From Paragordius varius (lineage: Eukaryota; Animalia; Nematomorpha), in the NCBI GenBank assembly GCA_964247055.1, contig OZ176055.1, forward strand, positions 5,642,001 through 5,706,000: DNA of 64,000 nucleotides, given 5' to 3'. Positions 7,624-34,207 of this stretch are shown here, in pieces (the first letter of the stretch is position 1; every line of letters starts with the position of its first letter). The notes beneath the pieces were generated by a model. It saw only the letters and a list, made by a program, of their open reading frames with translations. It had not been told where the DNA came from and searched no databases. A program made the position numbers and the translations under genes.

Positions 7624-10600
7624 ATGTTTCAATTGTTTATTTTATTGGGAGTCGTAACAATAAATCAAGCTGGTATATCATTAATATTAGTAATTCTAAT
7701 TTAACATATATAATTAAACTTTTATGTCATATTTATAGTTATACGGTTGTCAAATATCACCTATCTCCATCGATCAAAACCCGAAATCTATAATGGTCCA
7801 GGTAATACAAAACATTTATTAAGTGTAAAAATTTTTACATAACAAACGTAAAAATATAAAGCGAAATATTTTTTCAATATATCATTTACAGTTCAAATTC
7901 ACCCTAAAAATAAATTATGTATTTTCGAACTAATATAACTCATTATTAATATAAAATATATGTTTATGTTATAGTTTATCCTTTTTCAGTATTATTTTAA
8001 TTTAAAACAATATTTTTATTTTTTAAAAATATATAAAAATATTGGTAATTTTTAATCCTAAAAAATATATATTTTATTTGAGGGTGAAAACAGAATTGGG
8101 TGAATTTGAATTGTTCAAAGGTGAATTGGAATTGTTCAAGGGTGAATTTGAATTGTTAAGGGTGAAATTGAATTGTAAATGGTATATGTATTTAAAACCT
8201 TGATTTTTTAAACATAATTTATCGTTTTGAGTGCAAATTAGGGCATATTTAAATTGTTGAAATACAAACTATTAAGGTTTAAAAAGGTATTGGTCTCTTT
8301 ATAAAAAAACATATGTATAGCTTAAAATTTTTAGGTTTTGTCTGTACCATTTCAATTTATAATGTATATGTTTAATTAATTTACATTCTATAGACCATAA
8401 CGATAAGACACATTCAAATCAAGTGTATTGGGCACCCTACAAAGAAACTCAAAATAAAGTGCCTCTGAACGGTTCTTTTATAATTAAAATACTTTGTTAA
8501 ATAAATTAGGAAAGGACTCCCCTGTGATTACATTTTGTAATATTTTAGATGAATACATTCTGCATATTAATTTTTGATAAAACAAATAAAGATTTTTATA
8601 AAGCTCAAAAAAATACTCTTGTTAAATTAGGATATAATAAAGCGACATCCGACTTATGCCATATATTGAACAATATTTTCATTGTGACTATGAGGTCTGG
8701 GCAGGTGAGTGTGTTTGCCCTACAATTTGGAAATAAAAAAATGTATATTTTAAAATATAAAATAAAATTATCGAATTTAGGAATTTTATATTTATTATAT
8801 AAAAGTGTGTTTGAAATTTTTTGTTTCATGCTAATATATCATTACTTAAATTAGTGACCGAATTTATTGTCCCCAATTTTACCAGAATCGAAGATAAAAG
8901 TAATTAAACTATCCTAAAAAATCAAAAATTCAATTTAATTTCAGTTTTATGTTATATTAATATATTTTTGCATCATTTTCGTAGTACAATGGTTCCAAGA
9001 TCGTATATGCCTTATTTAATATTTCGATTCATATTCATATTATATCAAACTTAATTTTTTTACCGAATTTAGAGGCCAACAAAATCCGCAATTTTGACCA
9101 AAAAAGTAAATATATATTAAATTAAAAATATATAAATTTGGATAAGGATTTATATTATTTATATTTTATTAAAAATATTTTTTTAAAAATATTCGGACCA
9201 TAACTCAAATTTATATTTAAAATAGTACATCAAATAAATCAAAGAAGTATGTATAAGTTGAAATGTGATATGTAAAAAATATTTTTTTTAATTCATAACT
9301 AAATTTTAATTTAATTTTACTATAAACCATAGATAATACACGATTACTCATGTTGTTTGAATTAATGGGAGGTAAAATTTAATAATTTATTCAAATAACC
9401 AAAAATCAAGGAATTAGAAAGATTAAAAATTAAAATATTAAATACAAATAAAAGGTAAAAAGATTTTATAAAAAACAATATTTTTGGTTCCTGATTGGCC
9501 CTATTGATTAGAATCTTGACTATATTGCCAAGTTACAATTTTAAATCTTATTTGGGACGAAAAAGATTAAAATTCAAGGTGCTAAAACATGGTTTTTTAT
9601 AAAAAATCTTAGTATATTACTTTTTATTTTTTTAATTTTATTTTTTGATGTAAAATGCGTTTAAAAAATTGATTTTATTAATACAAAAATCAATATAGAG
9701 GCTAACACATAAGAGTTCTTTTTTATAAAAATACTGGCCTTTTTTCTTGATTAGGGTCCTAAATATGTAGCACTCTTTGCTTATAAAAAATGAAATAACT
9801 GCCTTTAACCTAATTATTGTTGTGAAAAGTTTTTAAAGTATGAAGTCAAAGTTATTTTTTGAATTCATATAAACGCCTTATCTATTTACAAACGGTTATT
9901 GTAATTCTATGGTGACAAGAGCTGATTAGAATCGATGATGAAATTATTTTTTTACATAGAAAAACCATTATATGAATAAATAGGATTGTTTTATTTTATT
10001 CTATAACATGGATTATATTTGTTTAGAATTGCTTCAGCTTCAAAAAACACTGACGTTTGGTAATAATTTTCACATTTTTACTTTATAAAATTTATGGTAA
10101 TTAAAAAATTATTTTTAGTATTGGGACCGTTTAATCCAACACTTGGTAAGTTGAGTGTGTATATATTTGGTTTAAAAATAAAAACCTTTTTTATCAATAT
10201 AAATACTATATTTTATATATAGTTTAATTTATACTACTAAAATATATTTTTCATTTCTCTAACAACTCGCATACCGAACAAATTGAATCATCTGCTTAAT
10301 ATAAATAAATAGGGACTTAGTAAAACTAGAATACAATTTCAATGTTTTGTTTTTTTTAACATCAATGTTAATTTCATGAAAATTTTTAAAAACAAAACTG
10401 CTGAGCATCAGTTTTTTGGGTTTGTATTTCTTTTGTGGGGACCCAAAATTTTTTTTACCTTGCGAGTTTTATCCAAAAATTTCAAAATCTAACATTTTAA
10501 AATCATATTACACATTATCAAATTAAGACATCCTTCAAAAAAATATATAGTAAACTATATGATGTGTGCTTAATAACCATTATCAAAAGTTTTATATTAT

Positions 10601-11944
10601 TATAATCTATATAATTTATATTTGACGCCATGATCAACGGATTTTGAGCTTATAAAATTAGTTTAAAGATTCTAAGTTGCATGTTATCTGATTTATTGGC
10701 GTATACTGGATTTCGTTTTTGATAAAACGAATTAAGGGGGTATAAAATTAATACATTGCCGAATTTTTATCAAAATTTTAAAAAAGTTACGCGTATATTC
10801 TCAGAAAAAGTTTGTAGATAGGATGCTTTTTTAACAAATTAGAAAAAGATAACTATCACATATACGAATCCTAAAATATTTACAATTATATTGTCAAGTA
10901 TATCCTCAAGCTTTATTATAATAGCATGTAAAAAAATCATTTTTTTAAAAAGATTTTGACAAGCATTATAATTTATAAACAAAGGTATGGGTGATTCAAA
11001 GACATCGAATTCAAGTTGCATGGATACACCGATAAAACCGCCTCAGATAGCGACTCTGTTAGAATCATTAAATAAATCAGGTTTTATAAATACTTTAAAT
11101 TTTAAAATGTTTAATATGATGCTTAGTAAAAATAGACAATTATCAAAATATAATAATAAACTTATAGTATAACGATATAAAACTAAATAAATTCTAATAT
11201 AATCATTTCATTACCTTTTGAATTTTTATATGGGGGGAGTTTAATTTGGGCTGTAAATTTTTGCTTTTCGATAGCCCACCCAATAGCTTATGTTGATGAT
11301 CCATTTTTCTGATTTTTGTACAAAGTCCTAATTTTTGAGTTATAATTGTATAAAATGAAAAATTTGGGTGTTGTATGAAGCCCTTAATAGGACAAAATTA
11401 AATAATTTAATATCAATCTCGTAATTTTGTAATCTATATTGTATATTAAATAAAAACTCTAATTATGCAGTTTTCAAAAAATAATATGTTAGTATTGTTG
11501 TTTAGTAAAATCAGAAAAAATTGTCAGCTTAACTTTTGAAATGATATTTTAGCAATTTTACATGTTTAAAGGTTTAAATATTATTTAAATGCGCCTAAAA
11601 TCATAAAATATACATTTTTTGTCAAAAGCATAGATATATTTAAATTTAACATCTCCTGGAGTATAAAAACCTGTTCCAGTGTTACAATTAAACGATATTA
11701 CTTCGATTTGACAAAGTATATTATAATAGAAACCTAAAATCTTTAATGTAGAATATATTATCTTTTGATTTGATTAATATTACAAAATTGTGTTATTCCC
11801 TACACATTAGATTTTAAATCAACCAAAAATGCTCTGAAATCGATCAAAAAATATGCAGAGGATTTGGCTCAAACACCGTTACCCAATACTCGTATTACAT
11901 TTAATTAAAACAAAAAATAATTATTTTCAAAACATTAATATATA

Positions 11945-11987
<43 letters not shown>

Positions 11988-12041
11988 AAGAGAAGAAGAT
12001 ACAGAAGTATGACAAATAAATATCAAACACAAAATAATTAA
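7624..12041 (+). CDS. 5' exon cluster of a secreted micro-exon-type gene (signal peptide MFQLFILLGVVTINQA). Exons 7624-7672, 7739-7801, 8394-8471, 8510-8536, [8631-8704 out of frame by 1 nt], 8855-8899, 8985-9002, 9073-9105, 9226-9246, 9333-9371, 10027-10059, 10119-10145, 10985-11080, 11811-11891, 11986-12006 (or terminal to 12041)
   Basis: ATG exon ends in phase 1. The following AG...GT segments are open only in phase 1 and are 63, 78, 27, 45, 18, 33, 21, 39, 33, 27, 96, 81 and 21 nt (all multiples of 3), GC-elevated over the flanks. No recognisable family. Confidence 0.7.
7880..8184. mobile_element. TA-flanked MITE family C (TIR TACCATTTACA) with 21-bp subterminal tandem repeats
   Basis: Ends TA-TCATTTACAG / TGTAAATGG-TA; repeated GGGTGAATTTGAATTGTT units at ~8090-8175; second copy at 30604-30947. 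Confidence 0.85.
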
Positions 12042-12050
12042 TTATACATA

Positions 12051-13585
12051 TACCATTTGCGATTCAAGAGTGTCCTCGAACACTTAAAATTGGTCCTTGA
12101 ACACTTCATGTTGGTCCTTTGGCTTTTTTGTTATGTTTTTAACTTTTATCATTAATCGTAAATTATTATATCTCTATTTAACATATACTTTAAATCAATA
12201 TCAATTTTTAATCCTCCAGAAACCCTATATCATCATTAAATTTTGAATATTTATATGAATTTTAATAAGATTTAACACGTAATCAAAAAAATAAGTTTTA
12301 TGGGTTATTTTACAATTCATTTAAAACATTCATAAGTTAATAATTTTGTTAAATTAGAAAAAAATAGTTTGAAACAAAAAAGTGGTTTCTTAATATTTTT
12401 TTTATTTTAAGTGAATCTATATATTTATAAAAATGGAAAATGCTGGCTTTGTGATCTGGTACAGGAAAACCGGTAGACCCAATCAAATCCAAATATCGAA
12501 AAAATATAATCATTAATGACGACAATAGCTTCGCCCTTTTTTTGAAAAAGGCCCCCAGTTCGGGCCCACCCCGTATGAAAAACGGTTTTTTTTTGAAAAC
12601 AGAAGTCCACAAAAATCGTGTATTTGAGACAATTTTCAACGTGTTGGACCATTCAATTTCAAATATGATTTTTGTTTACTTATTTTCGATTGCGCCGAAC
12701 ATAGTCGAGTCACTTTTTTGATTTAGGCCCTCTTTTTACCCGCTATCCCCGTAAAATGCCACCTTTTTCAAAAAACAAAGTCCACAAAAATAATTTTTTA
12801 AATCGATTTTTCGCCCTAGGTCTTAGACCGTAAAAATTCTATATAGATTCCACGTATTCCCTATTAAAAGGCAAAGATTTTAGTCTACCGTTTATTTGAT
12901 GATAGCTGCTGGGTAAGGAGCTACCCGCTAAAAACTGATTTTTCATATAACTTTGTGATCTGTTTCCGGAAAACCGGTGAACCCAATCAAATCCAAACAT
13001 CGAAAAAATTTAATCATTAATGAAAGCCCCGACAATAGCTTCGCCCTTTTTTGGAATTAGGTCCCCAGTTCGGGCCCACCCCGTGTGAAAAATGGGTTAA
13101 GTCAATTTTTTGGAGAACGTTTTGGCCCATTCAATTTCAAATATGATTTTGTTTACTTATTTTTGATCGCGCTGAACATAGTCGACTCACTTTTTTGATT
13201 TAGACCTTTTTTTACCCGCTACCCCCGTAAAATGCCATTTTTATCAAAAAAAAAGTCCACAAAAATAATTTTTTAAATCTATTTCTCCCCCAAGTAAACA
13301 ATAAATTAGTATGAATGCACCGTTTATTAAATAATTTTTCGAAATAATCCACATATGTAGATCATTTTATTGTCCCTTTTTTCAAATAACCCCCTCCCCC
13401 CAGAAGTCCGAAGGACTTCCTCGGGCTGCGTAGCAGCACGAGATTTATGCTAGTAAATTTATAAAAAAATAAGACAATCAGGTTAAAAAAAATATTAAAT
13501 AAATGCAAAAATTATGGTTAAATCCAAATTTAAAATTTTAGGACCAACTTGAAATATTGAAGATTCAAGGACACACTTGATATTC

Positions 13586-13592: not shown

Positions 13593-13633
<41 letters not shown>

Positions 13634-14137: not shown

Positions 14138-15373
14138 CAAGTGTGTGCAAAAATTTTTTTTATAAGATAGCTTATGACCAGCGATTTGCCGCAAAAAATT
14201 TTATTTTCTAACAACCTAGTTTTTGAAATATGAGAGAAAATGAAAATTGGGCAAAAAGTGAAAATTAAAGATAATTAAGGATAAATCAAAAATAATAAAA
14301 AATTTGAGATAATATGGCTTATTATTCATTTTAGGATATATTTTTAATATACAAATAGCCTAAAATCATATAGTTAGGGTTTCTATAAAATTTCAGCTCA
14401 AAAGATGGCGTTTGTCTTTTATTACACTTAAAGGACAAAAATATTAAATGAAACTATATATAAATATTTTTTTAATTATTTACTACATAAACTCACTATT
14501 AAAATCTTAACATTCATATTTTATTCAGTAAAAAATACTTATATATCAAAATAAAACCAAAAAATTGTTTTTTATATTTGCATTTTTTTGTCATGTGGTT
14601 TAGTGTATAAAAAATTTATACTGTTTTATTTTGGATTCATACATGAGTGGGAATTATTAAGTATATTATGTAAAAGAGGATTTAAAATTAGTGTAATATC
14701 AACCAACAATCCTTACAAATACCTGTAACAAGTCTGTTTTATGACAAATTAATATTTGTATTGGGATTTGTACGGATTGTTGGTTGATATTCCACTAATT
14801 TTAAATCTATTTTGCATAAATTATATACTTTATAATTCGCACTCATGTAATGCAAAATAAAACAGTATAAATTTTTTATACACTCATAAACCACATGACA
14901 AAAAAAATGCAAATATAAAAAACAATATTTTTGGTTTTATTTTGACATATAAGTATTTTTAACTGAATAAAATATGAATGTTAAGATTTTAATAGTGAGT
15001 TTAGCTAGTAAATTAAAAAATTTTAGTGACATAGTTTTATAAAAAAATTGTCTTGTGAGTGTGTTAAAAGAAAAACGCCATCTTTTAAGCTGAAATTTTA
15101 GAAACCCCAATTATACGATTTTAGGCTATTTATATATTGAAAATATATCCTAAAATGATAATGAACCATAATATTTCAAATTCTATCATTTTTTGAAGTA
15201 TCCCTTATTAACCTTAATTTTTACTTTTTGCCCGATTTTGATTTTCTCCCAATATTTCAAAAACTAGGTTGTCAACAAAAATTTTTGCGGCAATTGAATT
15301 GACTTGTCATAAGCTAGCTCATGAAAAAAATTTTTTCGTTAAATCAAAATGACCCTCTTTTTTGCACACAGTG
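14138..15373. mobile_element. 1.24-kb foldback (near-complete inverted repeat) element
   Basis: 14138-~14720 is the diverged reverse complement of ~14765-15373; termini CA(A)GTGTGTGCAAAAA / TTTTTGCACACAGTG flanked by TAT/ATA. Confidence 0.88.
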
Positions 15374-15670
15374 ATAAATCCATTTAATAAAAAATTATGA
15401 CTTACAGTATGCACATTTATGCTTGCTATTCACATTATTGTTGGCCAATTGGTAATACATTAGCCTGTATTAGAAAATTAACTTTGTGGAAAAAATATCA
15501 ATATCAAGATTTTAATGTTTATAACTATACACAAGTGTGTCTATACGCAAGTGTGTCAATTGGCCATCAATAATGTCAATAAACAGCAAAAATTATGTGG
15601 TATTATAAAAGCACTGATAAAATTGTGCATTTTTTTACAAAAAACGCAACAAATTTGTCTGTGTAAAAAG

Positions 15671-16804
15671 ATCGGATATCAAATTTTTACATTTTTTTCA
15701 TGTTACCGGGTATTTAAATTTATAATATTAATTTTTGATAATATATTTATTAGCTCAACTTAACCCGTTCCCAAACGTCGTTAAAATCAATGCCACCACC
15801 ATAAAAGTTCCTATAAGTATGTATGTTTTATTACATGAATCATTCGACTTATTTTAAATTGCATACTTCATCCCTCAAAGCATTGTAAATACAAAAGTTA
15901 GAAATAACTGAGTGGTTAATGAATAATTTCTTTTGATGTTAGTTCAAATTGGAAATATTACAACTCCTGGATTAGCCAAAGAATTATCTTTGTTAATTCA
16001 CCAATCTCCAAAGAGAAGTGATGAGACCACTGCTAAAAATGAAAAAGTTGAGGATTTGAAACTAAATATATTTGGTAATAAACGAATAAAATCATTTTAT
16101 ATTTCTTTTTATTAAAACAATTATTATTATTACATTCCTGCTGTAGATATATTAAATAATCGGTATACCATGGCTAATACCCGAGCAGGTATAATTTTAC
16201 ATATATAAACTTAAAAAAAATTATTTTTGAAATCAAAAATAGATGTTGAAATATATGGTGAAATAAAACTAAAAATGATTTTTTTATCAATTTAATAAGG
16301 TCAATGCTGATGACCAAAAGATTCACCATATAAAAATATATAGAAAATTAATAAGCGCAAAATATCCTTTTCCATATTTAGCCAAATCATATGTTTTAAT
16401 TTTTTGTGTATAAACGTTGAAAGTTGTGTAAAAAAAATAAACCATACACATTTTAAATACAACACAATATATTGTTAAAAAATTAAAACAGACAAAAAAA
16501 TATTTTTGCCTTTAATTTATTCCAAGTTTTAAAATAAATGCTAAAATACTAAAATAAATTAATTGAATGAGATGGTTAAATTTTGATTCGATTATAAACA
16601 ACTTTATTTGTTTAAATTTTGAAGTATTTAAAGCTTTTTTATAGTCGAAAAAATATATTAATATCATGTTTAATAATTTAATAATTTAGAAATAGTTCCA
16701 GGCCTTGGAATTAAATTGATAATGAATGCCGTCGAACATATGATATCCGTACCAGATATTTTTGGTTTTGTCAAATTATTATTATGTGATTATCCCTATT
16801 CTTG

Positions 16805-16845
<41 letters not shown>

Positions 16846-17724
16846 TATTTTTAGTCGAAAAATTCTGGCAATTATTGATGGATGGTAATTCATTAAATAA
16901 AATTTTTATAAAAAATATATTATCTATATAATTTTTTTCAAATAATTAGCCAGTGAAATCATTACCTTACCAATATCGTTCGGTATGTTTTACCAAACAA
17001 TTGCTGAAAAATTAAGAAATATTATGTGAAAAAAATTGAAAAAATTCTCTTATTTTTAGTCCCTAATATCATTTTAATGTACCATCCTAAAACCGGACCA
17101 AGTATGTTTAAGATTTATTTTCTACTTGTTTATAAAATAAATCCCTAAAAAAACTTTATTTTAAGGTGTCAAAATGGTCAACATATCAATGTTAAGGAAA
17201 GAGCAAATGCCGCAAATTCCAAGTTTTAAAAATTTTTTGGCTCCAAAAAAATAATTTTAAAAATTTATTTTATACATTTCTAGGACCAACTCGAGTCATT
17301 GAAATAAACAAAACTACCTTCCAAATACCAATCAGTTATAGATAAAAAAATATTTTTATATATATACACATATTCATATAATTTTCCAACATTTGTATTT
17401 ATTTTAATAGCCAAAATTAATAATTTAACCACGAAAGGCATCGAAAGCGACATTTGTCTCTTGTTTAAATACAATGACACGGCTAAACCAATCCAGAATA
17501 GTATATATTTAATAGAGTTGTTGATTGATAAAAAAACTTTTTAAAAAATTGCGAAAATTATATTTATAAAATATATGTCCCATAAATGTGATTATAAAAA
17601 TTTATTTTAGATAAAAAAGCCTCTTTTAAAGATAGCGATGTCCAAACAATTTCTGCAGGTTAAAAAATAAATCTTTTATATGTTTTGCTCATTATGGGTA
17701 TGCCCAAAAACTATTTAAAAAATT

Positions 17725-17774
<50 letters not shown>

Positions 17775-20700
17775 ATCGTACCCAAAACTGGAATCGAAAT
17801 TCATTATAAAGGCGATAAACGGAAATTGATAAAATCCAAGGATATTTTCGGTAAAATTTTAATTAAATTTACTTATATAATTGATTTATTATTCGGAAAA
17901 TATCTCAAATATAATAAGAATGCTAAGACATGATTTACAGTAAGAGTAAATAAACATTGCCACTTTTTCATTGAAAAAAATTATTGGCTTTAGTTTTTTT
18001 TTGCTATTCACCAATTATAATTCTCTTTGCTGTATATGCTATCTGGCAATATCTGATGGAAAACTAGCAATGTTAAGTTATTCACACTGTATTATAGCTA
18101 CAGTGGACCTCCCCATAATATCTATAATCAAATATATATAGCTTTTTATTCACATAATGTGCATAAACATTTGAACCATTCATTTCAGTCCTTCGATGGA
18201 AATTGGGGTCTTTGGAAAGCCCAGGCTTGTTTAGAATTAAATATTTTAAAAAATATGGAATAAATTGAAGCCATAGCAAATTTCACTTATATAACATCAA
18301 TGAACCAAAATATAAAACATTCAAAAATACCTGATATTCCTTATTCAGAAGCCAACATGGCTAAGGTGACCAGACGTCCCGCTTTTGGCGGGACAGTCCC
18401 TCTTTTTCACACTTTGTCCCGCCTCCCGCTACGTTTTAAAATGTCCCGCTTTTTCACGATTATATAAAAAAAAATTTTTAATACAAATAAATTTTTTTAT
18501 CTGTTTAAATTTTAAATTAAAATTTTTTATTTTTATTTTAAAAATATTTATTTTTTTTCGAATTTATATCATATGATTATACACTTTGCTTCCTACTACT
18601 ACTGTCATCATTATCAAAAGCCAAGTTAATACCACAAATCTCTAGATTAAAAGACAAATTGATACCACAAATCGGTACCTTACACGTTTATTTCACAAAA
18701 TTAAGGTAATATAATATTTATTATACTAATATTTTAGTTTTATCACTTGCCAACATTATTAAAAAGCCAAATTAATACCACAAATCGGTAGCTTAAAAGA
18801 CAAATTGATACCACAAATCGGTACCTTACAAGTTTATTCTAGAAAATTAAGGTAATATAATATTTATTATACTAATAGTAGTTTATAAATATGAGCACAA
18901 AAAGAGGTAATTCAACGATGAATTAATGAAAGATTTTCCTTTAGCAAAAAAACGAAGAATGAATCATTTGTTAAATGTCTTATATGCGAGGGGGAATTCA
19001 CCCTAGCACATGGAAGCATGATACTACAAAGCATATGGAAACACAGAAACATAAAAAACGTTTAGATATGGCGGCATCATCTTACAAAATGAGCGATTTT
19101 TTTCGAAAAACCGCATTTGGAGTCTTTTCACGCCGTTAATCACAATCATTCCTTTAGATCTATGGACTGTATCTAGGTTATTCGCACATTATTCCATATA
19201 AAATTTACATGTGCCCGTACAAAGGCCAAAGCCATTGTGTGCAATGTCCTTTCGCCACATGCATTTTCTGAAATACAAAAAGATTTGCTGAAAATTAATA
19301 TCTTATCCCTATACTCTGATGCATCAAATCACCATGAAGCAAAATTATTTCCCAAAATTTTAGATTTAATTTCTTTACCCGGTGTAAATTCCGAAATAAT
19401 ATTTACTCCAATAATGAATATTCTAGAAAAAAATAATTTAAAAGACAAAATTATCGCATATTGCGCTGACAACACCAATACGAACTTTGGTGGAAAAGCA
19501 AGGAGAGGAACAAAAAATACTTTTCATAAATTAACAGATAATCTTAATCAAAACATTATTGGCGTTGGGTGTGCAGTGCATATAATACACAAAGCTATTC
19601 AAACAGCTGCTGATTTGTTACCCTTAGATGTGGAAAATGTAGTTGTTAAAATATGTTCCTATTTTTATGTATACACGGTACGTGTTGAAACGATTAAAGA
19701 ATTCTGTAAAAATGCAGAAATATCAAAAAATGCTTGGATATTGTAAAACTCGTTGGTTAGCTTTTATGCCAGCTATTTATCACGGGACAAATGTCCTTCA
19801 ACTTTAAAAAAGTTTTTTGAAAGTGATTCTTCAAAAATATGGTTATTCTTACATAATCAAGCTTCTCTGTTTCAAAATGTTATTAAATTTATAGACGGTG
19901 ACAAAATTTCGGCAATCGAAGTAACCAATGAAGTTAGTAACCGATAATTCCAATGTCAAGAACGGTTAGAAAATAATTTACCATTAATCATCCGTAATAT
20001 AATAAATAATTTAGAAAAACAAGGAATAATAAATCGCCAAGATATCCTGTACCATATAAAAATGTTTTATACAAACTGTAAAGATCATTTGGAAGATTGG
20101 ACGACGCAATTCAATAAAATGGATCATTTTCATTGGATAACATTAAAATCAGAATTAATTGGTGTGATGTTCAAAAATCATTTGGTTATATCTGCTCCCA
20201 AAAATTCTCAAAAAGTAATCTCAGAAAATGATCTTTTTTCTGAAGTATCATTAGTTAAAAGATATATTAATAATGAAAAACTTAAATTATGGACAAAAGA
20301 AAAATACACAGTAGAAAAGAAATGGTTGGAAATATTTCATCATTTTGAAGCCAACTATAATACATACAATAATATTTTAAAAATTGTGGAATTCGCACTA
20401 TCTTTACCTGGAACCAACGCTGCTACTGAGCGCGTTTTTTTCCACAGTAAATCAGGCGTGGACATTGGAAAAATCAAATTTAAATGTTGAAACTTTAAAG
20501 GCCGTCTTATCTGTCAAATATAATTTGACAAATTCTTGTAAAGACTTTTCTACAATATTTTAAAAAATGATGACAATCTGCTAAAACGCATTCGCTCAAA
20601 AAAATATACCAATGAATAAAATATTTTCTTATAATTATAAAGTTTTTTTGTTAAAAAATAAACAAAATTACTTAAAATATTGTATAAGTCTAATTTGTCA

Positions 20701-23700: not shown

Positions 23701-25078
23701 CCACAAACTCCAAGTATTTATTGACATTATTTCAAAAAGTATGGTAAAAATAAAAACTTGTTTGATAATAAATTAAATTGGTCCATTGATATTAATAAAA
23801 TCTATAAAGAATAACTACAAATTTCTTAAATACTTGAAATCAAATATGGAACGTAATTTTATTTTCAAAATTTTGACTAATGAACCCGAAAATATTTACA
23901 ATCAATCTTGAAATGAATCGTTAGATGTTCCAAGCTTACAATTTAACAATTCCATGTTGAAAATTCCAATCAGCTATGTTGGCCAATTATCTACTGGTTT
24001 GACACTCTCCGATTTCTGTATTCTGTTTAGTGTTGGAAATCGAATGCAATGTAAAAGTTTTCGTATTCTATAACATATATATTAGAGAAATATAATTATT
24101 TTATTCCTAATTAAAATTTATTTATTGATAAATTTAGCTACAAATACTATCATATCATCGGTTGCTAAGATAAGTGATTTAAATGCAAGTATGTTGTATT
24201 CTGACAAATATTTTATCAAAATTAAGTTTTTTATTAAAAAAATCACAAAATCCAAAAATGGTATTTTCTTTGTTTTAGTTATCCTCCCTGGGAAAGGTGT
24301 GCGCTTGTTCGCAGAATACATGGATATAACTATCAAGAATAGGAAGATTTTTAGTAATCTTTTTGTACCATTCATATACCCGTTTATTTTATATAATACG
24401 AATTATACATAATTATTTCAGCCACGGAGTTTTGGTCAAACTTAACAGGTATGACATAATAATTTTTAATTATTATAATAAAAAATAAAGAGTAAAATAA
24501 CAACAACAACTAGTTTCGATTTCAATGGGGAATCGTTTTAAAATCGATAATGAATGAATAAAAAATGAACTGTATTAATATTACATATATTTTATAGTTA
24601 TAGCAAATAAAATGAATTTATAAAATTTTTAATTATATTTTTTTTGATTGTTCTATAGATGCTATGAATCGCGTTTTTATTGGAAAAAGTAATTTTTATT
24701 ATTGAATAAACTTATTATTTTATATGTTCATAATACTGTCCTGAATTTTCTATCTGGTTTGTTTGGTTAAATCGTTAGAATAGGAATTTAAAAAGGCTAA
24801 ATGGCAATTAAACTAAGCTGCCTTTAACAATAACACTTTATTTTAACAGCAAATTGCTATACTATATTTAAATATTTCATGTAATTAAAGTCATTGCCTA
24901 TTTATATACCATTTTTTAATAGTATTCCTACAAAGTATTATTATTATTATTATTATTATCTTTTAAAAATAAATTAAATATCTGTTTTTGTCACATATAT
25001 TATTTTTACTATGTCATTCATTTAAGAAACGAGTAAGATATATATATATTTCTAGTTTTTTGACATATTTTGCGTCAA

Positions 25079-25112
<34 letters not shown>

Positions 25113-28100
25113 TCATTTTAGTGTTTGACATTTTCTTCAGCTATAATATTGACTTGAAGGGTAAATTATTTTCCAATCAATTTCGATTAAAATTATTCCA
25201 ATTTATAACATTTTTTAGATGGAAAAACGTTTTACGCCAACACTTCCAAAAAAGATTCAAAATCCATTAAAATAAATGAAACAACTATACAAATACCCAT
25301 AAGTAATAATTTTTAATAATTCCATTAGCTAAAATTGGAAACAAAACATTACCGGGATTCACGTCCGATTTTTGCATATACCTAAAAATAGAAAATAATA
25401 CGTCTTCAGATCAGAATCAAACTAAAAAAGAAGGTATAAATAGATAATTTATAATAACATCCATTTATTTATCTATTTATATATCCATGTATCCAGGCTC
25501 TTTAATGATAAAATACTTTACTAATTATTTTTCGGTCTAAAAAATATTAAATTAATCTCGGCCTCTGAAAAATTTCCGCCACCTTAACTGCCATAAAAAC
25601 GAAAATAACTGTGGTTAACTCTGTCTTAAAATCTGAAGCAGTAACTATATAAAACTACGGACTTGCGTGACAATTGTCCCATAATTTTTAAGGAATTATG
25701 TTAACAAAATAACTTTTTGGTGAAAATGTATCTCAACTGGACACACGGTTTTTTTCACTTAATAAAACGGAATTGCTTTATCTATCTAAACTAAACACAA
25801 TCAAAATCGGCGCAGAGAATGGAAACTTTGATGTTTTAGGTATTTTGATAGGATATTTGGTTATTTTGATCCAAAATATAATTTTATTTTAATTAAAAAT
25901 CATATTTTTTGTGAAATGTATTTTCGGGACTACTAAAGCGGTACTGAGTGCACCCTTGTCAAGCTTATTTCAAACTCAATGTGTTAGAGAATATTTACAT
26001 ACATATTTATAACTCGGAAATATATAATGACCTAGCGATTGCGTTCTAGTGTGATATTGGCTAACTTGATTTTCAATTTTACCTGGGTAGGTACCCGCAA
26101 AAAAAGCAAAATCTAAAAAATTTTAGTGTCCCTTTTATACCGTAGGCTACCTCTCAACGCCGCCTCATGCAGACCCGTAGAAAAGTTGTCATATTTTAGC
26201 ATCATGTGACGCCTGGTGTTTAGTCTTTAGACCAGGGGTGTCCAACACAAATGGCTTCGCGAGCTGCATTCGCAAAATATATGGGCATTCACAAATATTT
26301 TATTAGATTTTAAACATAGGACTGTGTAGATCTAATATTCATTTTAACGTTTTTGCTAGTTCATTGCCGAAATTCGTAAAGATTTAATAGGAAATTTGTT
26401 TAAAAAAATAATTTTATTTATAATTCGTATTAAATTTTATATTTAAAATTTCTCGCCGGCTGCAGTAATATTATAGAGGGCCGTATGTTTGACACCTCAT
26501 CCTTAGATAAAAATTTTATAAATTGTGGACGAAATAAAATTTATTGCATAATAACAAAAATGTTTTAATTATTATTATAATATATTACAGATTTCACCAA
26601 ACTTTTACCGTCCGAAATTGCACCGACTTATGCGAGTAATTCTTTTTATGTTTTATGCAAATTATTATTTTGTTTAAATTTAAAAATTAAATCCACTAAA
26701 ATTTACCATTTCAAACAAAATAAGCTATCAATCCCAATGTCGGAATCACAATTCATCATCAAGGCACGCAATACGATGTCTCAAGTCCTAACATCTTTAG
26801 TAAGTTGGTTTCTTAAGTATTTATGCAGGATTTCCATAATAATATGATAATAAATAAAAGTGGTCCAAAAAATTTTGAAAATATAAGAACATAATGAAGA
26901 GATACTCAACAAATATATTCACAAGTCAACCTTTTTAAATATTTTTAGACGCAAAACGCCCAAAAATATTAAAATAACTCTAAAAATAAGAATTTCAATT
27001 GGTCAAAGAACAATACTTTTATTCGTAACTTCATATGCAAATTTACAATACATTAATAATTTGTGTCTAATTTATAAATTTTTCCACAACTTTATCAATA
27101 AGCTTTAATTTTAATTATTGGATATCATTTTGAACCTTTATGCTTGTATTTACTAAAAAGGGTCTTGAAACGATAAGGGAAGCGTATCTATGAATTTTTT
27201 AAAAAGACTTTGTAATCGTTTGTTAATTTTCCGGTTAAATATATATATAATGAAGGAGCTCATCTTAGTTTATCGTTTTATAAAAAATTACTTTATCTAC
27301 AGGTAAAAACTTATCGAGACTGTCTCGATTTAACACATATATTGAATGTAATTCAAAATTATATCTTGTATATTTATAGGTAAGGCCTTTTGGGGATCTT
27401 TAACGGGTATATTAATTATTTATTATTTTTTGACTTTTTATTTTAATGGGCTTACAAAACGTTTTTATTTATTTAGTTGGTGGAATAGTGCTACTTTCCA
27501 TGGGAACATGTATTTATTTTTTCTATTTTTTTAAAAAAATATTATTGTACAGTAATGCATCCTTTATTTTATCAAAAATTATTTTTTGTTAAATGGGTAT
27601 AAATATTTGTCTGAGTATGGAAAAACAAGTCGTATTAAACAATATCATATTCATCAAAAAAGTAAGAAAAGTTTGGGGGAAAGTCGTCGAAAATCTTATC
27701 CTGTAAATTCCGTCTTTTAGCATTAGTTTTAAGATGAAGGGTTAGTTGTTAATATATTTTCATTATAATTAATTCATTTTTACTATATAAGATTTTCGAG
27801 GCCATTCCCCCACACTTCTTTTACTTTGATGAATGTGATATTGTTAAATACCAATAGAGCTCTAATTCCATTCTTTGACAAATGTAAACCCATTGAACGA
27901 AAAAAAATAAATTTTTGATAAAATAATATAAGACTGTAATATTTATGCCTTATGATATCCATATAGTAACAATCGGAAGTAAAATATAATTTTTTTAAAA
28001 TAAATTTATTTAATAATATAATTCAAAAAATTTAATTTTTACTCAATGATACAGGTATGATGACATCAAATAATTCAATATAAAAATGTTACACAGAGGG

Positions 28101-31100
28101 TTGGGTCTGATCAGTTATAAATGCCTTGAGATCGTGATGGCTATCGCTTTTAAAAAAGGCCCCAAAAAATTATAAAATGTTAACACGGTTAAATAATGGT
28201 ACGTGTATAATTTTATGTATAAAACGTGAAAGGTGAAATATTTTATCGACACAATCCGTTTAATAAATTACAATATGAAATTTCTATTTTTGTGTAAATC
28301 GTCTGGTTATATATAACCATGAATGAATGCATTTATAAGCGGTCAGAACGATTATTTTTTGACCGGTAAAATGCCCAACCCTGAAATGAATCATATATTT
28401 AAATGATTGATTGATCATTTATTTAGTAACAAATGTCTTGTTTGGCTCAACCTCATCCACATCAAGTTTATCTTTTTTATATTATTAAATAAAAAATTGC
28501 ACAGACAAAAGGTAAAAACCAAAAGACAATTTTTTTAAAAAATAACATCTATAAAGTGTTATTATACTGCATTATAAAATTCAATACTGTAGGTAAATAA
28601 TTTATGTCGGAAAAATCAAGGTTTGAAAAAGTATGGCTGTTAGTAGATTAAAAATATTTGTCTTTTATTTTTACGTTGTGCCTGTATAATTTTAATTTTT
28701 ATTATATAACTATAACGTGATGATATATAAAATGATATAATATAGTTGCCTCCACAGCAACTACAGGTATTGTAAAGATTTTTTATAAAAAGGTTTTTTT
28801 TAATTTCAAATATTATTTTTTATATATTTAGCGACAGGATCATCCATTGAACATCTTCCTGATCGTATTAATAATATGAATAATTAAAATTTTTTTACAT
28901 AAATATTTTAGTTGATGGTATTTATTATTCTTAATTATCTAAATAATTCGAAAATGTTTTACTATTTCATTAATGATTATTGTGAATATCACCTATACAA
29001 TAAACGTATTTAGAAATTCAAAGTAACATATTTTGGTTATTTATTAATTTTTATCAATATTAAAATTTTATTTGATAGGACAATTGCCCAACCCATCGAA
29101 CGATAATATAAACGAAAACGATCTATTAAGTAAATTCATTTTAATTAAAAATTAATTTTAATTATATGCAAAAAAATGTTTATATCTTGGATAATGTGTG
29201 CCTTTTCTATTACATAGATTTCGATGGGGATGATATTGATTCGCCTGGTATGATGAAATGCTTATAATTATATAACCGAATTTACCATTTAAAATTGATT
29301 AGGTATAGATTCGATAAGATTGTTTATCGGTTGTAGACGGTTATTAACAATTTTATCCAAAATATCCCTTTCTTTGTAATTATCGAATGCAATTCCATAA
29401 TACCAATAAAATTTTACGAATCCTTTGACTTTTACCAATTATTTTCCTTTATAACTAAAAATTTTCTAAAATATTTGATGGATATGTGAATTGGTGAATA
29501 GAAATTTTGTGTATATTTTTTCACTTATGCCGCAAAAAATCAATTTTTAAATTAAAGCATGGCCTATAAAAATCAATAATCGAATTATAATTATTTAATC
29601 TTGGTCGCCTTTGAAAATTCATTTTCAAAACACTTCCCACTTTCAAAATGGGAGATTACTTGATTCATTGAGATTATAATCTAAAGGTATTATGAGATTA
29701 TGATTAATTTAGGGCGGGAAGATATACGGGTTTAGACCCTTAATTTTGTCGGTAGGTTAAATATAATTATAACTCAGATTTGGGTGTTTTATTACAACAA
29801 TATCTGTAATTTTGTATTTAATATTGTGTTATGGTTTACGTACAGAAGTAAAACGTCGAAGACCAAGTAATGATGATGATGAAAGAAGAAACTCTATTTC
29901 TCCTGAAGCGGGCCCAAGCCAAACCAATGTACCAGAGAGACCTAAGCCGTCACACTCTGAATCCACTTCAACAAATACAAACTCCAATGCTGGTAGAGAA
30001 ACACAGAGTCAGCCAAGTTTCAGAGGAGATGAGGACACCTTAACTGACATGACTCGAGACACAGCGAGTGAAATTCCAGGTTAGAGATTTTGTCAAATTC
30101 GACAGGACAGGGATTAAAGATTTTTTTTGGTTCACAACTTTCGCAGAATTAAAGAATGTTGACAATATATTGTTTACCAATATAATATGGTTGATAGCGG
30201 TTTTAGAATCAATTTTAAACATTTTATCAAATTTAGAGCAAGATCCTCAAAACTTGGATGACATAGAAGCGAATCCAGATGAAGCACAACAATTGGAAGA
30301 GGCTGATGTAACTGGTATAACATTTCATTTAAGTTAATTTAAATTTGAAATATCAATTTCTTGGCCCTTTAGGAAAAGGATTTGAGTGAAAAAATATTTT
30401 AATATATTATACTTACTATGATGTGAGAAATAAATTGAAGTAAAAAATAAATTACGTGAAACAAAAAAAATAATTTTAAAGACCGTTGTACTTTTTTTAT
30501 ACTTAATTTTTTTCAATATACTTTCATAGTATTATACTACAAACTATGAAATAAACTGTATACCATCAATTTTGTGCTTTAAAATTGTAATCAAAATTTA
30601 TAATACCATTTACAGTTCAAATTAAAATTAAAATTCACCCTCGAAACAATTTAAATTCACCCTTGTACAATTCAAATTCACCTTAAAAAATAAATTGTGT
30701 TTTCGAACTAATATAACTGATTATTAATATTTAATATATCTTTATGGCATAGTTTATTATTTTTAAGTATTATTTTAACTTAAAACAAAATGTTTATTTT
30801 TTAAAAATATAAATAAATATAAGTAATTTTTAATCTTAAAAAACATATATTTTATGTGAGGGTGAATTTGATTTGTTCGAGGGTGAATTTGAATTGTTCA
30901 AGGGTGGATTTAATTTGTTTAAGAGTGAATTTAAATTGTAAATGGTATATGAAGTATAAGGGTTTAAAAAAGTAGGATTGTGTCTTTTGAAAAAAAATAC
31001 TTGCCGTTTTGTCCATATAATTTTATTTTTTACTGTAAATGATTTGTAGATTCCGAAGAATCTGAAGTCGACGATGATTGGTTTGATGCCGCAGAAGAGA

Positions 31101-34100
31101 ATGAACGTATAATAATTTGATATGAAAAAGCTTTTTTGCGTAGATAAATATATATATATATATTACATTTAGCATTGAACGCGCATCCATCGTACCGTTT
31201 TTTTAGGCGATGTAAGTTAAATTTAATATCATCTTCTTGCATATACAGTAGACCTAGGCGTTTTTGAGATAAATTAAATTTAAATTTTTCAGAAAATAAT
31301 CTGTTTTACATAATACATTTATGATAAAAAAATATATATTAAATATTTATTGCTCTTTTATAAATATGATAATTTTTTTAATTGTCTGGGCTCACTAAAA
31401 AATATCTACAATAGTACTTTTGTGAGAAACTTCAAACTATCATAACTAAAAATTGGATTAGTGTACATGAGCATTATTAAGAATCAATTAGTCTATTTTA
31501 AAAATCCCATTTCGAAAGGAGGGTCCACTGTATAATTCTATTTGAATTATATCATATGACTGAGTCAATCAGTGTTAATTTTAATATATTATGTTTCAAG
31601 TTGTATTGAGACTTAGAGCAGGTATCACAGATATTTATACTAAATATGCATGGAATAAACATAATTTTTCCATGATTGAATTTATTTTTTGCAATATTGA
31701 CACCATAACTATTTCTCTAACCATAATTTTGAATCTACAATATTTAGGAGCTACACGGATACATCATAGTTTATTTTATATTAAAATTATAATTGATCAA
31801 ATATATTTTTTAAAATTAAAAAAATTAATATTCTATATTATGATCTATATAAAATTCATTTTTTGATAGTTTCTCGTGGATTGGCAAGAAGTATAAATTA
31901 AATTTTTGATCAAAAATCTAGCCAGCAATGCCATCAGCCTAAGTAAGAATTCTCCTATATATGTATATTAAAATTACCTAATCTATGTAAAACTTTAACA
32001 TTCTGGAATTGATATGACTAAATTTTAAAATAAATTCTTAGATGCCGCTCATCATGGTAAATAAATTGAATACATAACTTTTTAACCTGGCTCTAACTCT
32101 GCGTGCCAGAGCTCGAACCCCGAAACTACGCATTTTTTCCATCATCACTGTCAGCCCTGGGTAGGCGAGTGTTAAAGCCTTCACATGTCCAAATACAAAT
32201 TTAAGTCTTTACCCTTTAATAAAAAAGGAAAAAAGAGACTCTAAACTGTATATATATATATATAACTTTTTAAAGAGACAAATGATCTTGACTTTTCAAT
32301 ATCTGAATGACATTGAAAACGTGTCTACGGTTTAAATTGCGTTGAAATTTAAATTTTAAAGAATTAAAAACACATTCATAATTTAATATGTTAATTTTCG
32401 GAATTAAATTTCGTTAAAAGTAAAAAATATGGTTAAAATTAATATTAGTATAAAAAGATTTATTTATTATCCAATGTTTTATGCGTAAACTCCACCATTT
32501 ATCTCAAAAACCTCTTTTGATATTTGTTTCTTTATGATTAAATTATTACAAAATAAAAAAATACATTTATCAAATAAATACATATTACTAAACTTGGCAA
32601 CAGTCAAACAATCGCTTGTATACCATTTTTCATCCAAACGCAACATTTTTAGTTTACGTTTGGATGGAAAATGTCGCTTTAGTTTAAAAAATATGGCATT
32701 GTTCGAAAAACTGTTGTTTTTAACTGAAATATGGCATATGATAAAATAAACTTCACTATTAACCTAATCAAAATCATACATATCGGCTGAAAGGATGGTA
32801 TTTTTAAATTAACTTTAAGAGATATAAAAAACGGTCAAATCACAGCACGAATACATAATTTAATTAGTACATTTCATACTCTAAAGTACACCTTTATGAT
32901 AAAAGATATATAATTTATCAATCAATAGAAAATACGTCTCTTTGTCATTAATTTAAAATTCCTTACATTTAGAGCTATTATTGGCTACTTCATTATTAGC
33001 TAACAGAGAATTTAAATTAGGTGTCTGTTGTCAAAGAAATTTTCCTTTTTTGCCACACATTTAAGAGTGTCTTTTTCTCCACAATTTTTGAAAATATAAC
33101 TATAAAAACCAGAAATTTCATATATGGCAACACATATATAAATTAAATTCCGAAATGCCCAAAAATATTTCTCAGTACTGGAGTATATAAAAATATTTAT
33201 TTAAAATATATTTATTATGATAGGATTAGTAAATTATGTCCGAAGTATGTTTCATTAGTTGAAATCTATATGCTTTAACATCATCATTGATAATTTTTGC
33301 TTTAAAAAAATAAATTTTTAGACATGCGACAAGGTAATTATTCTTATTATTATTAGACAAGTTTTCCATGATATTTTTTTCTAAACCTATTTTATTTTTT
33401 AACCATCTTTAGCCATGCCTCGTAAGTTATTTATGTTAAATTTAAATACTCTTAGATATGCGAAATGCGGTTAGAGGTATATAAAGTTCAGCAGTGATAT
33501 AACTTTTAAAGATATACTTTTTTAACAAATATTTTATAATATGCTATAGCTTTCAGAGAATTAAAGACAGGTGATTGTTTTTTCCCTTTCTAATCGAAAT
33601 TATTTGAATTTCATTAAAATTATAATAAATATACTTTTATGTGCTATTTTCACATAATCATTTAAACCTAATAAAAAAATGTTTGATTTAGATCTTAGTT
33701 CAACTTTAAGAAGTAATTAAATTAATTTTAAATAGATTTATATTATTTTCATCTCTACCTGCTTGTTAATTTTAGGCATTGAAAATCATGTGGAAAGTAA
33801 TATATTGTAACTGAAATAAAATATTTGAAATTAAGATCATTTCATAAACTACTTATAAATAACTCTGTAATTAAAGTACTCTCACTTCAATTACTAAATA
33901 TTTTAGTTATTTGAGTGCTATATTTTTCTGATACGGTTAAAATAAGAGGAGTTAGATAATATTTAATTAACTAATTTTTTATTTTTTACTTTACAAATTA
34001 AGGTTTCCCAACTGAGGCAGCCGAAGAAAATATTGCAGGTAATTTTTGCCTTTTTTAATATTTATTTAAAATAGAATTTTTGGAAGAAGAGCATGGTAAT

Positions 34101-34207
34101 GATTTTTATTTATTTTTAAAAAACTTATGAATTTCAAATAATACATAATTTAAATTTTAGACCTGGAAATGTTACGTAATGAAATAAATCCTGAAACCAA
34201 AAAATAG
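15671..34207 (+). CDS. Large repeat-containing micro-exon-type gene (possibly continuous with 7624-12006). Exons 15671-15709, 15754-15816, 15943-16074, 16147-16188, 16690-16764, 16855-16884, 16950-16982, 17060-17101, 17166-17222, 17284-17334, 17411-17500, 17611-17658, 17773-17850, 22049-22072, 22153-22164, 22308-22334, 22392-22424, 22584-22595, 23630-23713, 23925-24050, 24138-24188, 24279-24353, 24422-24448, 24659-24688, 25027-25032, 25122-25160, 25219-25302, 25329-25433, 26591-26635, 26725-26799, 27303-27347, 27380-27406, 27477-27509, 27967-27978, 28746-28766, 28832-28864, 28912-28917, 29079-29129, 29218-29247, 29846-30079, 30237-30314, 31050-31106, 31173-31211, 31601-31621, 31748-31768, 31870-31890, 31922-31942, 32042-32056, 32110-32160, 33000-33020, 33224-33244, 33322-33333, 33413-33421, 33456-33476, 33550-33570, 33692-33712, 33776-33796, 34003-34038, 34075-34095, 34161-34207 (TAG)
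   Basis: Every listed internal exon is AG..GT bounded, a multiple of 3 and stop-free in phase 1. Homologous exons recur (INxTTxxIPI; IGNxTxPG..SDFC; IVPGxGI..DIF; E/A-FW). The terminal exon ends in TAG with AATAAA at ~34290. The smallest exons are individually less certain. Confidence 0.78.
18891..20610 (+). pseudogene. Frameshifted hAT transposase (ORF-track pieces 19237-19746, 19753-19947, 20062-20490)
   Basis: ADNTNTNFGG, VGCAVHIIH and LSLPGTNAATERVF motifs in shifting frames. Confidence 0.9.
20665..21480 (-). pseudogene. Antisense, internally deleted fragment of the same hAT transposase, located inside copy 2
   Basis: Its reverse complement matches forward transposase segments (e.g. CAGACAGCTACTGATTTGTTAACCCTGGATGTAGAAAA; TTATCACAGGACAAAG; TCAAATATAATTTGACAAATT). 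Confidence 0.88.
26233..26500. mobile_element. hAT (Buster/Charlie-type) MITE
   Basis: TIR CAGGGGTGTCCAAC / GTTTGACACCTCAT; degenerate 8-bp TSD CTTTAGAC / CCTTAGAT with central TA. Confidence 0.7.
30604..30947. mobile_element. TA-flanked MITE family C, copy 2
   Basis: TA-CCATTTACAG...TGTAAATGG-TA; 21-bp AATTCACCC units at both ends; collinear with 7880-8184. Confidence 0.88.
32621..32800. mobile_element. Small MITE with TACCAT termini and an internal palindrome
   Basis: TACCATTTTTC / GAAAGGATGGTA ends; internal CATCCAAACG...CGTTTGGATG. Confidence 0.5.

Follow-up and report, generated by a model that had tools for sequence, protein, structure and literature searches.

Organization of the micro-exon gene

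Between positions 7624 and 34207 of the forward strand, the window (the whole stretch of 64,000 nucleotides that was analysed) contains a gene with about 50 small, frame-neutral exons. It begins with a 49-nt signal-peptide-like exon that ends in phase 1, as the sequence-only reading of this DNA had described. The peptide encoded by this exon, read directly from 7624–7672, is hydrophobic; its hydrophobic core is typical of signal peptides, and small residues form a cleavage motif. A scripted check identified 46 internal exons up to 34.2 kb that are bounded by AG and GT, have lengths that are multiples of 3 and are free of stop codons in phase 1. Their lengths range from 9 to 138 nt with a median of 34.5 nt, and ten are exactly 21 nt long. 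Beyond these 46, there is an exon of 234 nt (29846–30079), as well as the last exon (34161–34207), which ends in TAG. Of 47 internal exons, 40 measure at most 81 nt and seven are longer; the 24 of the 46 scripted exons that do not exceed 36 nt together account for only some 23% of the coding length.

The exons have a GC content of 36.8%, compared with 19.8% for the introns, and the splice sites are uniform, with TAG acceptors and GTA donors. Of the AG..GT candidates with high scores, 39 belong to the phase 1-1 class, against 0–4 in the eight other classes. This phase bias is absent from the other genes of the window. The joined model of 888 residues is open across every junction except for the unannotated gap 27509–29079. 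Most introns of the gene measure 60–130 nt (median about 95 nt), and introns of 24–36 nt are present both here and in the ribophorin II gene. Among 51 animals compared, introns shorter than 30 nt were reported only for myxobolid myxozoans and Dicyema (PMC13644364). The short introns seen here thus suggest that the genome belongs to a myxobolid or a dicyemid.

The N-terminal part comprises the following exons.

7624–7672, forward strand: exon 1, start codon and signal-peptide-like hydrophobic stretch, read directly (donor GTAT, score 6.5)
7739–7801, forward strand: exon 2, 63 nt, phase 1-1, with an N-I-T sequon (acceptor score 9.9, donor score 6.1)
8855–11891, forward strand: weakly supported exons 8855–8899, 9073–9105, 9333–9371, 10119–10145 and 11859–11891 (excess of phase 1-1 candidates)

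The last group bridges, by weak exons only, the 8 kb between the signal exon and the first repeat unit. In this region, a model trained only on downstream exons gave 7 candidates in the phase 1-1 class against 0–3 in the other classes; the weak exons are without homology or polymorphism support. The earlier description of phase-1 exons in multiples of three between AG and GT stands for the 46 scripted exons and their elevated GC content, but from 7.8 to 15.7 kb the chain has only about five supported exons. The exon count of about 75 given with it is probably an overcount. Although a lax penalty allows 74 phase 1-1 exons to be chained, chains of 14–38 exons come out of the controls (opposite strand, control region, 0-0 and 2-2 classes), and beyond the 46 exons the phase 1-1 excess is at chance level. 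Free-phase ab initio chaining was too noisy for micro-exons and took up transposon ORFs.

Four repeat units in the central region

The central two thirds of the locus encode four homologous units, which are 22–42% identical and have their introns in the same alignment columns. The repeated domain consists of about 130–150 amino acids and is coded by a common set of about eight small exons. Exon-class HMMs match four copies only. The units were assigned with these HMMs and the unit alignment.

15754–17222, forward strand: repeat unit 1, eight phase 1-1 exons of 63, 132, 42, 75, 30, 33, 42 and 57 nt
17284–23713, forward strand: repeat unit 2, exons 17284–17334, 17411–17500, 17611–17658, 17773–17850, 22049–22072, 22392–22424 and 23630–23713
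23925–24688, forward strand: repeat unit 3, exons 23925–24062 (138 nt), 24138–24188, 24279–24353, 24422–24448 and 24659–24688
25219–27509, forward strand: repeat unit 4, exons 25219–25302, 25329–25433, 26591–26635, 26725–26799, 27380–27406 and 27477–27509

The exon lists of units 2–4 are provisional for exons 7 and 8, as is the model of the stretch 27.5–28.4 kb. Exon 23925–24062 of unit 3 represents the first two exons fused, and in unit 4 an intron of 26 nt separates 25219–25302 from 25329–25433.

Linker, candidate membrane span and C-terminal exons

Downstream of the repeat units, the chain continues through a linker and an acidic tail into a run of micro-exons.

28427–29247, forward strand: Ser/Thr-rich and acidic linker, exons 28427–28465, 28746–28766 and 28832–28864 (these three with moderate support), then 29079–29129 and 29218–29247
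29778–29845, forward strand: candidate transmembrane span, 20 hydrophobic and then basic residues, in ORF 29773–30081, in frame upstream of the 234-nt exon
29846–30079, forward strand: largest exon, 234 nt (231 nt from the tandem acceptor at 29849), a basic motif followed by a Ser/Thr/acidic tail
30237–31196, forward strand: acidic exons 30237–30314, 31050–31106 and 31173–31196
31601–34095, forward strand: C-terminal micro-exon run, ten 21-nt exons and exons of 15, 12, 9 and 36 nt (21-nt length spike, GC-rich islands)
34161–34207, forward strand: last coding exon, ending in TAG

The linker exons were picked at all penalties in the chain search. An acceptor at 29778 would be in phase 2, which is at odds with the upstream phase-1 chain. 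The distribution of N-glycosylation sequons, with 18 in the first 648 residues against none in the last 240 and the switch at the candidate span, favours a possible membrane span at 29778–29845. A bridging exon at 29303–29375, which would put the span in frame, was considered and rejected; 10 differences are listed in its 73 nt, and third-position bias is absent from them.

The last 15 or so exons are all micro-exons. The 21-nt exons start at 31601, 31748, 31870, 31922, 33224, 33456, 33550, 33692, 33776 and 34075. The exons of the run are GC-rich islands bounded by TAG acceptors and GTAA or GTAT donors, and the spike in length at 21 nt (7 of 28 pairs) compares with a background of about 1.5%. 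The encoded sequence carries an amphipathic helix signal with a helical moment of z=4.5, and the net charge of the tail is -24.

Selection on the exons

The exons are under strong purifying selection. The selection test covered the 18 exon sites among the differences listed between the haplotypes, and 16 of these change only the third position of a codon and are synonymous when read in the proposed frame (P=1.7e-6); the two replacement differences are both conservative. Frame-breaking indels among the listed differences occur only in predicted introns, and a single 3-nt deletion lies inside an exon. The same pattern is seen region by region, again among the differences listed: in unit 1, six of seven differences are at third codon positions; exon 29846–30079 has six of seven synonymous and contains the in-frame 3-nt deletion, at 29870; and all four differences in exon 30237–30314 are synonymous. 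Listed indels of 1, 3 and 5 nt in the linker fall only between exons, and those of 1, 2, 11 and 12 nt in 30080–30236 mark this segment as an intron.

Transcripts and homologues

A 290-nt stretch of exon sequence, used as a query, matched only runs with intron coverage, i.e. DNA. Three RNA runs labelled as the same species contained no reads on 15400–18150. When the second exons of the four units were combined into a profile and compared with 1.84 billion representatives, only spurious matches were obtained. These were bacterial beta-propeller repeats and tandem-repeat artefacts. A word-based search with ORF 29773–30081 gave no candidate homologue, and single-exon family and fold searches (Pfam, Atlas and PDB sequences) gave no match. 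The first impression that the protein belongs to no recognised family has therefore withstood the profile, word-based and Pfam searches, none of which returned a homologue.

Comparison with known exon architectures

The likeness to schistosome micro-exon genes (MEGs) that was first pointed out for this locus is borne out by its architecture, in which a signal exon heads a long series of symmetric exons in phase 1, of which half do not exceed 36 nt. In both cases the organism is a parasite and a signal-peptide exon, a predicted one here, is followed by symmetric exons in multiples of 3; MEG products are secreted or located at the surface, as is predicted for the present gene. A MEG was reportedly defined by DeMarco in 2010 as having exons of 36 bp or less over most of its coding sequence. 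This description fits the C-terminal part alone. The last 15 or so exons (9–36 nt) are within the size range of schistosome MEG exons, which is 3–81 bp (bioRxiv 10.1101/2023.06.21.545858). Unlike the MEGs, the present gene encodes a protein of at least about 900 residues, in which four domains are repeated and probably folded. Its introns are mostly 60–130 nt, whereas those of MEGs are long, and its strong purifying selection (16 of the 18 listed differences synonymous) contrasts with their accelerated, often positively selected evolution and with the fast evolution of bicycle effectors. There is no sequence relation between the two, and the genome is apparently not that of a flatworm.

Class 1-1 modules of animal extracellular proteins follow the exon-shuffling rule of Patthy, by which tandem copies leave the frame intact. 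The present gene has the same phase-1 intron behind the signal peptide and tandem-duplicable sets of phase 1-1 exons. In such modules, however, phase 1 is found only at the module borders, whereas here every intron within the domains and the tail has this phase too, and the exons here are far smaller.

Compared by architecture only, the closest parallel, which the sequence-only reading did not mention, is the aphid gene megacycle, which has 118 exons, 2092 amino acids and 15 repeats with common intron positions (PMC9168663, Stern and Han 2022). It is a giant member of the bicycle family that arose by internal tandem duplication and is relatively conserved in sequence (PMC9168663). Shared features are an N-terminal secretion signal, which is a prediction for the present gene, many small internal exons, nearly all of them beginning at codon position 2, and about eight exons per repeat of about 140 amino acids. 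The bicycle family has been reported only from aphids and their relatives, and CYC motifs and salivary-gland expression are part of its definition (PMC9168663); solved members adopt saposin-like helical folds (PMC13552887). The present gene differs in having no CYC motifs and in its micro-introns, which point to another phylum. A further likeness is to Tb-MEG1 of the myxozoan Tetracapsuloides bryosalmonae, a micro-exon gene whose product is described as located in and on the surface of this parasitic cnidarian (PMC8481699, PMC7923790); should the present genome be that of a myxobolid, Tb-MEG1 would be its closest precedent by taxonomy.

Predicted product and alternative interpretations

We consider it likely that the locus is functional and codes for protein, as one gene or as two adjacent ones, with nearly all introns in phase 1 and nearly all internal exons in multiples of 3. 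Judging from the translated model, the product is predicted to be a secreted or surface glycoprotein that has at least about 900 residues and four repeated domains. The signal peptide would be followed by four heavily N-glycosylatable domains, a Ser/Thr-rich linker and possibly a single membrane span. Beyond the span, a very acidic Ser-rich tail would lead into an amphipathic helical end, in which each 21-nt exon encodes one heptad. This arrangement may have originated when symmetric exons, singly and in sets, were duplicated in tandem behind the phase-1 signal-peptide intron without harm to the frame, in keeping with the exon-shuffling 1-1 rule. The protein would be a conserved glycoprotein, either secreted or of type I at the surface, in a parasite that has micro-introns. 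We argue for mostly constitutive splicing, because purifying selection is strong and the domains are repeated and probably folded. The ectodomain exons in particular would be spliced constitutively, and exon skipping, if any, would be most plausible in the helical C-terminal run.

A MEG-like diversification, in which symmetric exons would be skipped in many combinations to produce variants of a secreted or surface protein from one locus, is unlikely. In its favour, skipping any subset of the supported internal exons would preserve the frame, since all are frame-neutral; the C-terminal run is made up entirely of exons of 9–36 nt; and a micro-exon gene product has been placed on the surface of a myxozoan (PMC8481699). 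However, the domain exons occur in conserved, ordered sets that form a domain of about 130–150 residues, and skipping one of them would probably break the fold. The strong purifying selection also stands against the fast evolution of MEGs, exons of 36 nt or less account for only 23% of the coding length, and no reads were found in the three RNA runs on 15400–18150. This lack of reads would also fit an accidental series of AG..GT islands in AT-rich DNA, or a dead pseudogene. Short AG..GT intervals are numerous in DNA of 25% GC, and the controls yield chains of 14–38 pseudo-exons, but the four-fold internal homology, the synonymous excess, the 21-nt spike and the excess of one phase class cannot all be accidental, which leaves this explanation with next to no probability.

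It is rather doubtful that the locus is split into a four-domain secreted glycoprotein ending near 29.25 kb and a membrane-anchored acidic helical protein extending from shortly before 29778 to 34207. The phase-2 acceptor that the span at 29778–29845 needs, unfit for the phase-1 chain upstream, speaks for such a split; against it, the phase-1 chain runs smoothly from 29218–29247 into 29846/29849, the search upstream of 29778 gave no exon that combines a start codon with a usable donor in the right phase, and it gave no convincing last exon for the upstream gene either. If there are two genes, a break near 29.3–29.8 kb is more likely than one at 12041, where a possible stop had been noted earlier. 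Membership of the aphid bicycle/megacycle family, which would make the genome that of a sap-sucking insect, is very improbable. The equal exon phase, with internal exons beginning at codon position 2, the combination of a signal peptide with many small exons, and the number of exons per repeat (8 per unit here, very near the roughly 8 per repeat of about 140 residues in megacycle; PMC9168663) would agree with it. On the other hand, the CYC motif is absent and the whole 888-residue model has 4 Cys; bicycle introns are long, compared with a median of about 95 nt here; megacycle has not been found outside aphids; and the introns of 24–36 nt belong to a size range that, below 30 nt, has been reported only for the myxobolids and Dicyema among the 51 animals (PMC13644364).

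A more general proposal we put forward tentatively and with somewhat less than even confidence: the genome, probably that of a myxobolid myxozoan or a dicyemid, may contain a whole class of phase-1 micro-exon genes for secreted and surface proteins that evolved independently of those in flukes and aphids. The present locus would be the 'mega' member of this class, with its eight-exon domain of about 130–150 residues, and the tail of one heptad per 21-nt exon would be a C-terminal module common to a gene family. Chains of micro-exons in the same phase are known as lineage-specific oddities, the blood-fluke MEGs and the aphid bicycle and megacycle genes, both of which are linked to manipulation of the host. 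Finding this design, plus micro-introns, in a third lineage would suggest convergence instead of an accident of history. Parasites would then have invented more than once a means of building and varying their surface by duplicating and skipping exons without loss of frame. In the present gene a large, conserved, repeated domain is encoded, as opposed to a short, fast-evolving peptide. This would make the locus a manageable system in which to ask whether symmetric exons promote evolvability, through duplication, or variation at the time of expression, through skipping. Automatic annotation misses or breaks such genes, so that the surface and secreted proteins of the parasite are probably under-annotated.

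Transposons in the locus

The transposon insertions had been cited as avoiding the exons and hence as a sign of selection. Their positions do lie between exons, but the avoidance is uninformative as evidence of selection because exons occupy only about 9% of the locus, so that chance alone would place all seven insertions outside them in about half of all cases.

18164–21625, forward strand: hAT-like transposon with decayed ORFs, in an intron of repeat unit 2 (ORFs, weak match to the hAT dimerisation domain)
30603–30955: MITE, for which family membership was found

The hAT-like transposon, which interrupts repeat unit 2, has homologues at 45–66% identity.

Symmetric exons of the gene

The locus at 7624–34207 on the forward strand opens with an exon of 49 nt that contains an ATG start codon and a short hydrophobic stretch resembling a signal peptide, and that ends in phase 1 at a GTAT donor. 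This exon had been described in a sequence-only reading of the same DNA, and direct reading of the sequence bore it out. Downstream, 46 internal exons were verified by script up to position 34207. Each is preceded by AG and followed by GT, has a length that is a multiple of 3, and is free of stops in phase 1, so that both of its boundaries fall after the first base of a codon. The features referred to below are as follows.

7624, plus strand, start of the 49-nt signal-peptide-like exon
15754–17222, plus strand, unit 1 of four homologous exon sets
17284–23713, plus strand, unit 2
23925–24688, plus strand, unit 3
25219–27509, plus strand, unit 4
29846–30079, plus strand, 234-nt exon, additional to the 46 scripted exons
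34161–34207, plus strand, last exon, ending in TAG

The internal exons are 9–138 nt long with a median of 34.5 nt; 24 of the 46 do not exceed 36 nt, and a length of exactly 21 nt occurs ten times. The window as a whole is strongly AT-rich (GC about 25–26%), and GC is 36.8% in the exons versus 19.8% in the short introns, which include introns of 26, 31, 34, and 36 nt. TAG is the acceptor at 41 of 48 sites, and the donor is GTAT or GTAA at 40 of 48. A tandem acceptor at 29844–29849 (cag/aag/) would make the 234-nt exon one codon longer or shorter at its 5' end.

The locus is a real and unusual gene, beyond chance, on four independent lines of evidence: phase classes, internal homology, a spike of 21-nt exons, and polymorphism. 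Together with the verified exons, these uphold the symmetric phase-1 chain proposed earlier. The phase classes were compared using splice-site matrices limited to intron positions and a codon score blind to frame. Among high-scoring AG..GT candidates, 39 were of phase 1-1, versus 0–4 in each of the other eight classes. The excess of multiple-of-3 lengths and of open phase 1-1 intervals persisted outside the first 25 exons used for training, and the same phase bias was absent from the other genes of the window. Hidden Markov models of the exon classes found the exon types always in the same order, each of the first four in exactly four copies and each of the next two in three. The four units are 22–42% identical, and their intron positions fall in matching alignment columns except in unit 3, which has its first two exons fused into one. 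Of the 28 good AG..GT pairs between 30.35 and 34.3 kb, 7 enclose exactly 21 nt; elsewhere, and also on the reverse strand, the share is ~1.5%.

The number of exons had been put at ~75. A maximal chain of 74 exons was reproduced at a lax penalty, but beyond 46 the excess is at chance level: the same chaining gave 14–38 exons when applied to the reverse strand, a control region, or the 0-0 and 2-2 classes. Multiples of 3 were not enriched among splice pairs from 7.8 to 15.7 kb, and only about five exons there stood out with a model trained elsewhere. A fair estimate is 46–55 internal exons.

Two sequence versions and selection

DNA runs carrying the same species label contain two versions of the sequence at equal depth, seen at 15739–15968, 29225–29452, and 30039–30312. 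The versions differ by about 4–10% over two compared stretches, by about 3–10% in exons, and by ~14% across one 105-nt intron stretch, which is far above the usual level of heterozygosity. Highly divergent alleles, homoeologues, or a mixed infection could account for them. Differences within exons are almost all synonymous. Among those listed, 16 of 18 exon differences are synonymous third-position changes in the claimed frame (P = 1.7e-6), and the remaining two replace a residue conservatively. Among the listed differences, indels of 1, 2, 4, 5, 9, 11, and 12 nt are confined to predicted introns, and the sole indel within an exon is 3 nt. The polymorphism pattern rules out a long alternative open reading frame through 30080–30236. 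Parts of the locus were also found at a very low depth of 1–5 in runs labeled with other organisms (29040–30420 in one run, with three more indicated by shared words), several contigs being identical to the window, as expected if parasite DNA contaminates host samples.

The predicted product

The supported exons join into an open frame of 888 codons with one junction stop, across the unannotated gap 27509–29079. The predicted product has the following parts, in order.

Signal peptide (predicted)
N-terminal stretch, weakly supported
Four tandem units of ~130–150 residues each, with many N-X-S/T sequons and very little cysteine
Linker exons, rich in Ser/Thr and acidic
Basic motif, then a 122-residue tail with a net charge of -24
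117-residue end that scores strongly as an amphipathic alpha helix (z = 4.5), mostly one heptad per exon

The first 648 residues contain 18 N-glycosylation sequons and the last 240 contain none, a distribution in keeping with a putative ectodomain and, after it, a cytoplasmic portion. A textbook-like membrane span with basic residues lies in frame immediately upstream of the 234-nt exon (29778–29845), but it requires an acceptor at 29778 of phase 2. This clash with the phase-1 chain leaves room for a less likely two-gene reading, in which 29.7–34.2 kb would hold a separate gene for a membrane-anchored acidic helical protein. No start exon was found for such a gene. The only candidate exon that could bridge the phases to the span, at 29303–29375, is not conserved. 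The span, a T-rich stretch adjoining an acceptor, could owe its appearance to chance; a membrane protein and a secreted one are about equally probable.

No relatives were found in protein, family, or structure databases. A profile built from exon 2 of the units returned only artefacts from 1.84 billion representative proteins, a word-based search with the largest open reading frame gave no match, and neither did single exons against Pfam, Atlas, and PDB. These searches had low power, the queries being contiguous exons rather than spliced sequence.

Comparison with other micro-exon genes

The analogy drawn earlier to schistosome micro-exon genes (MEGs) holds for architecture, in that both combine a signal exon with symmetric micro-exons. 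Schistosome MEGs are small and evolve fast, and it is the predominance of micro-exons that defines them. In architecture, the closest match is the bicycle/megacycle genes of aphids; the megacycle gene has 118 exons, 2092 amino acids, and 15 internally duplicated repeats with common intron positions, and its sequence is comparatively conserved (PMC9168663). An aphid genome is very unlikely here because of the 26–36-nt introns of the gene and those of 24 nt (53361–53384) and 35 nt (about 53224–53258) in the ribophorin II gene of the window, whose conserved frame demands their removal. Other genes recognized in the window are as follows.

38300–38700, plus strand, mitochondrial ribosomal protein L13
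42700–43340, minus strand, acidic ribosomal protein P1
49400–54000, minus strand, ribophorin II (OST subunit)

The L13 and P1 sequences appear to depart strongly from the consensus found in most animals, as they would in a lineage that evolves fast. In a comparison of 51 animal genomes, introns below 30 nt occurred only in myxobolid myxozoans and Dicyema japonicum (PMC13644364). The GC content is 36.7% in D. japonicum (PMC6736024) and 29.1% in Henneguya salminicola (PMC13644364). Given these values and the ~26% of the window, a myxobolid is the likeliest source of the DNA, with a dicyemid as a possible one. The presence of the L13 gene speaks against H. salminicola itself, which has no mitochondrion. 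One micro-exon gene, Tb-MEG1, is reported from a myxozoan, with its product on the parasite surface (PMC8481699, PMC7923790).

The RNA runs searched gave no match to the locus, which leaves splicing, and most of all any combinatorial skipping of exons, as something that we infer. The proposal that such skipping diversifies the protein, as in MEGs, is unsupported. The central exons recur in conserved sets of fixed order that encode a repeated domain, and they are under strong purifying selection, whereas accelerated evolution is reported for MEG proteins (PMC4350168) and for aphid bicycle proteins (PMC9168663). Both points argue against skipping as the main purpose of these exons, and diversification by this route is unlikely for the domain exons. 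It is more economical to suppose that, thanks to their symmetry, single exons and whole exon sets could be duplicated in tandem without loss of frame, and that the gene grew in this way behind a phase-1 signal-peptide intron.

Repeats

The repeats of the window are decayed hAT-like transposons, MITEs, and (TA)n runs. Transposon insertions had been noted to fall between exons; their positions were confirmed, but they carry no weight as evidence of selection, because exons make up only ~9% of the locus. The hAT-like family has two decayed copies (4700–6500 and 18164–21625) with reading frames interrupted by stops, and its closest database proteins are just 45–66% identical. Two MITE copies (7879–8195 and 30603–30955), 86% identical, lie within introns of the gene; they carry a terminal inverted motif, and a 21-nt sequence is repeated in tandem three or four times in their interior. 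The 8-kb stretch that separates the signal exon from unit 1 holds a long, nearly perfect palindromic element (14326–15158), with nested arms of up to 103 nt and 89–90% complementarity.
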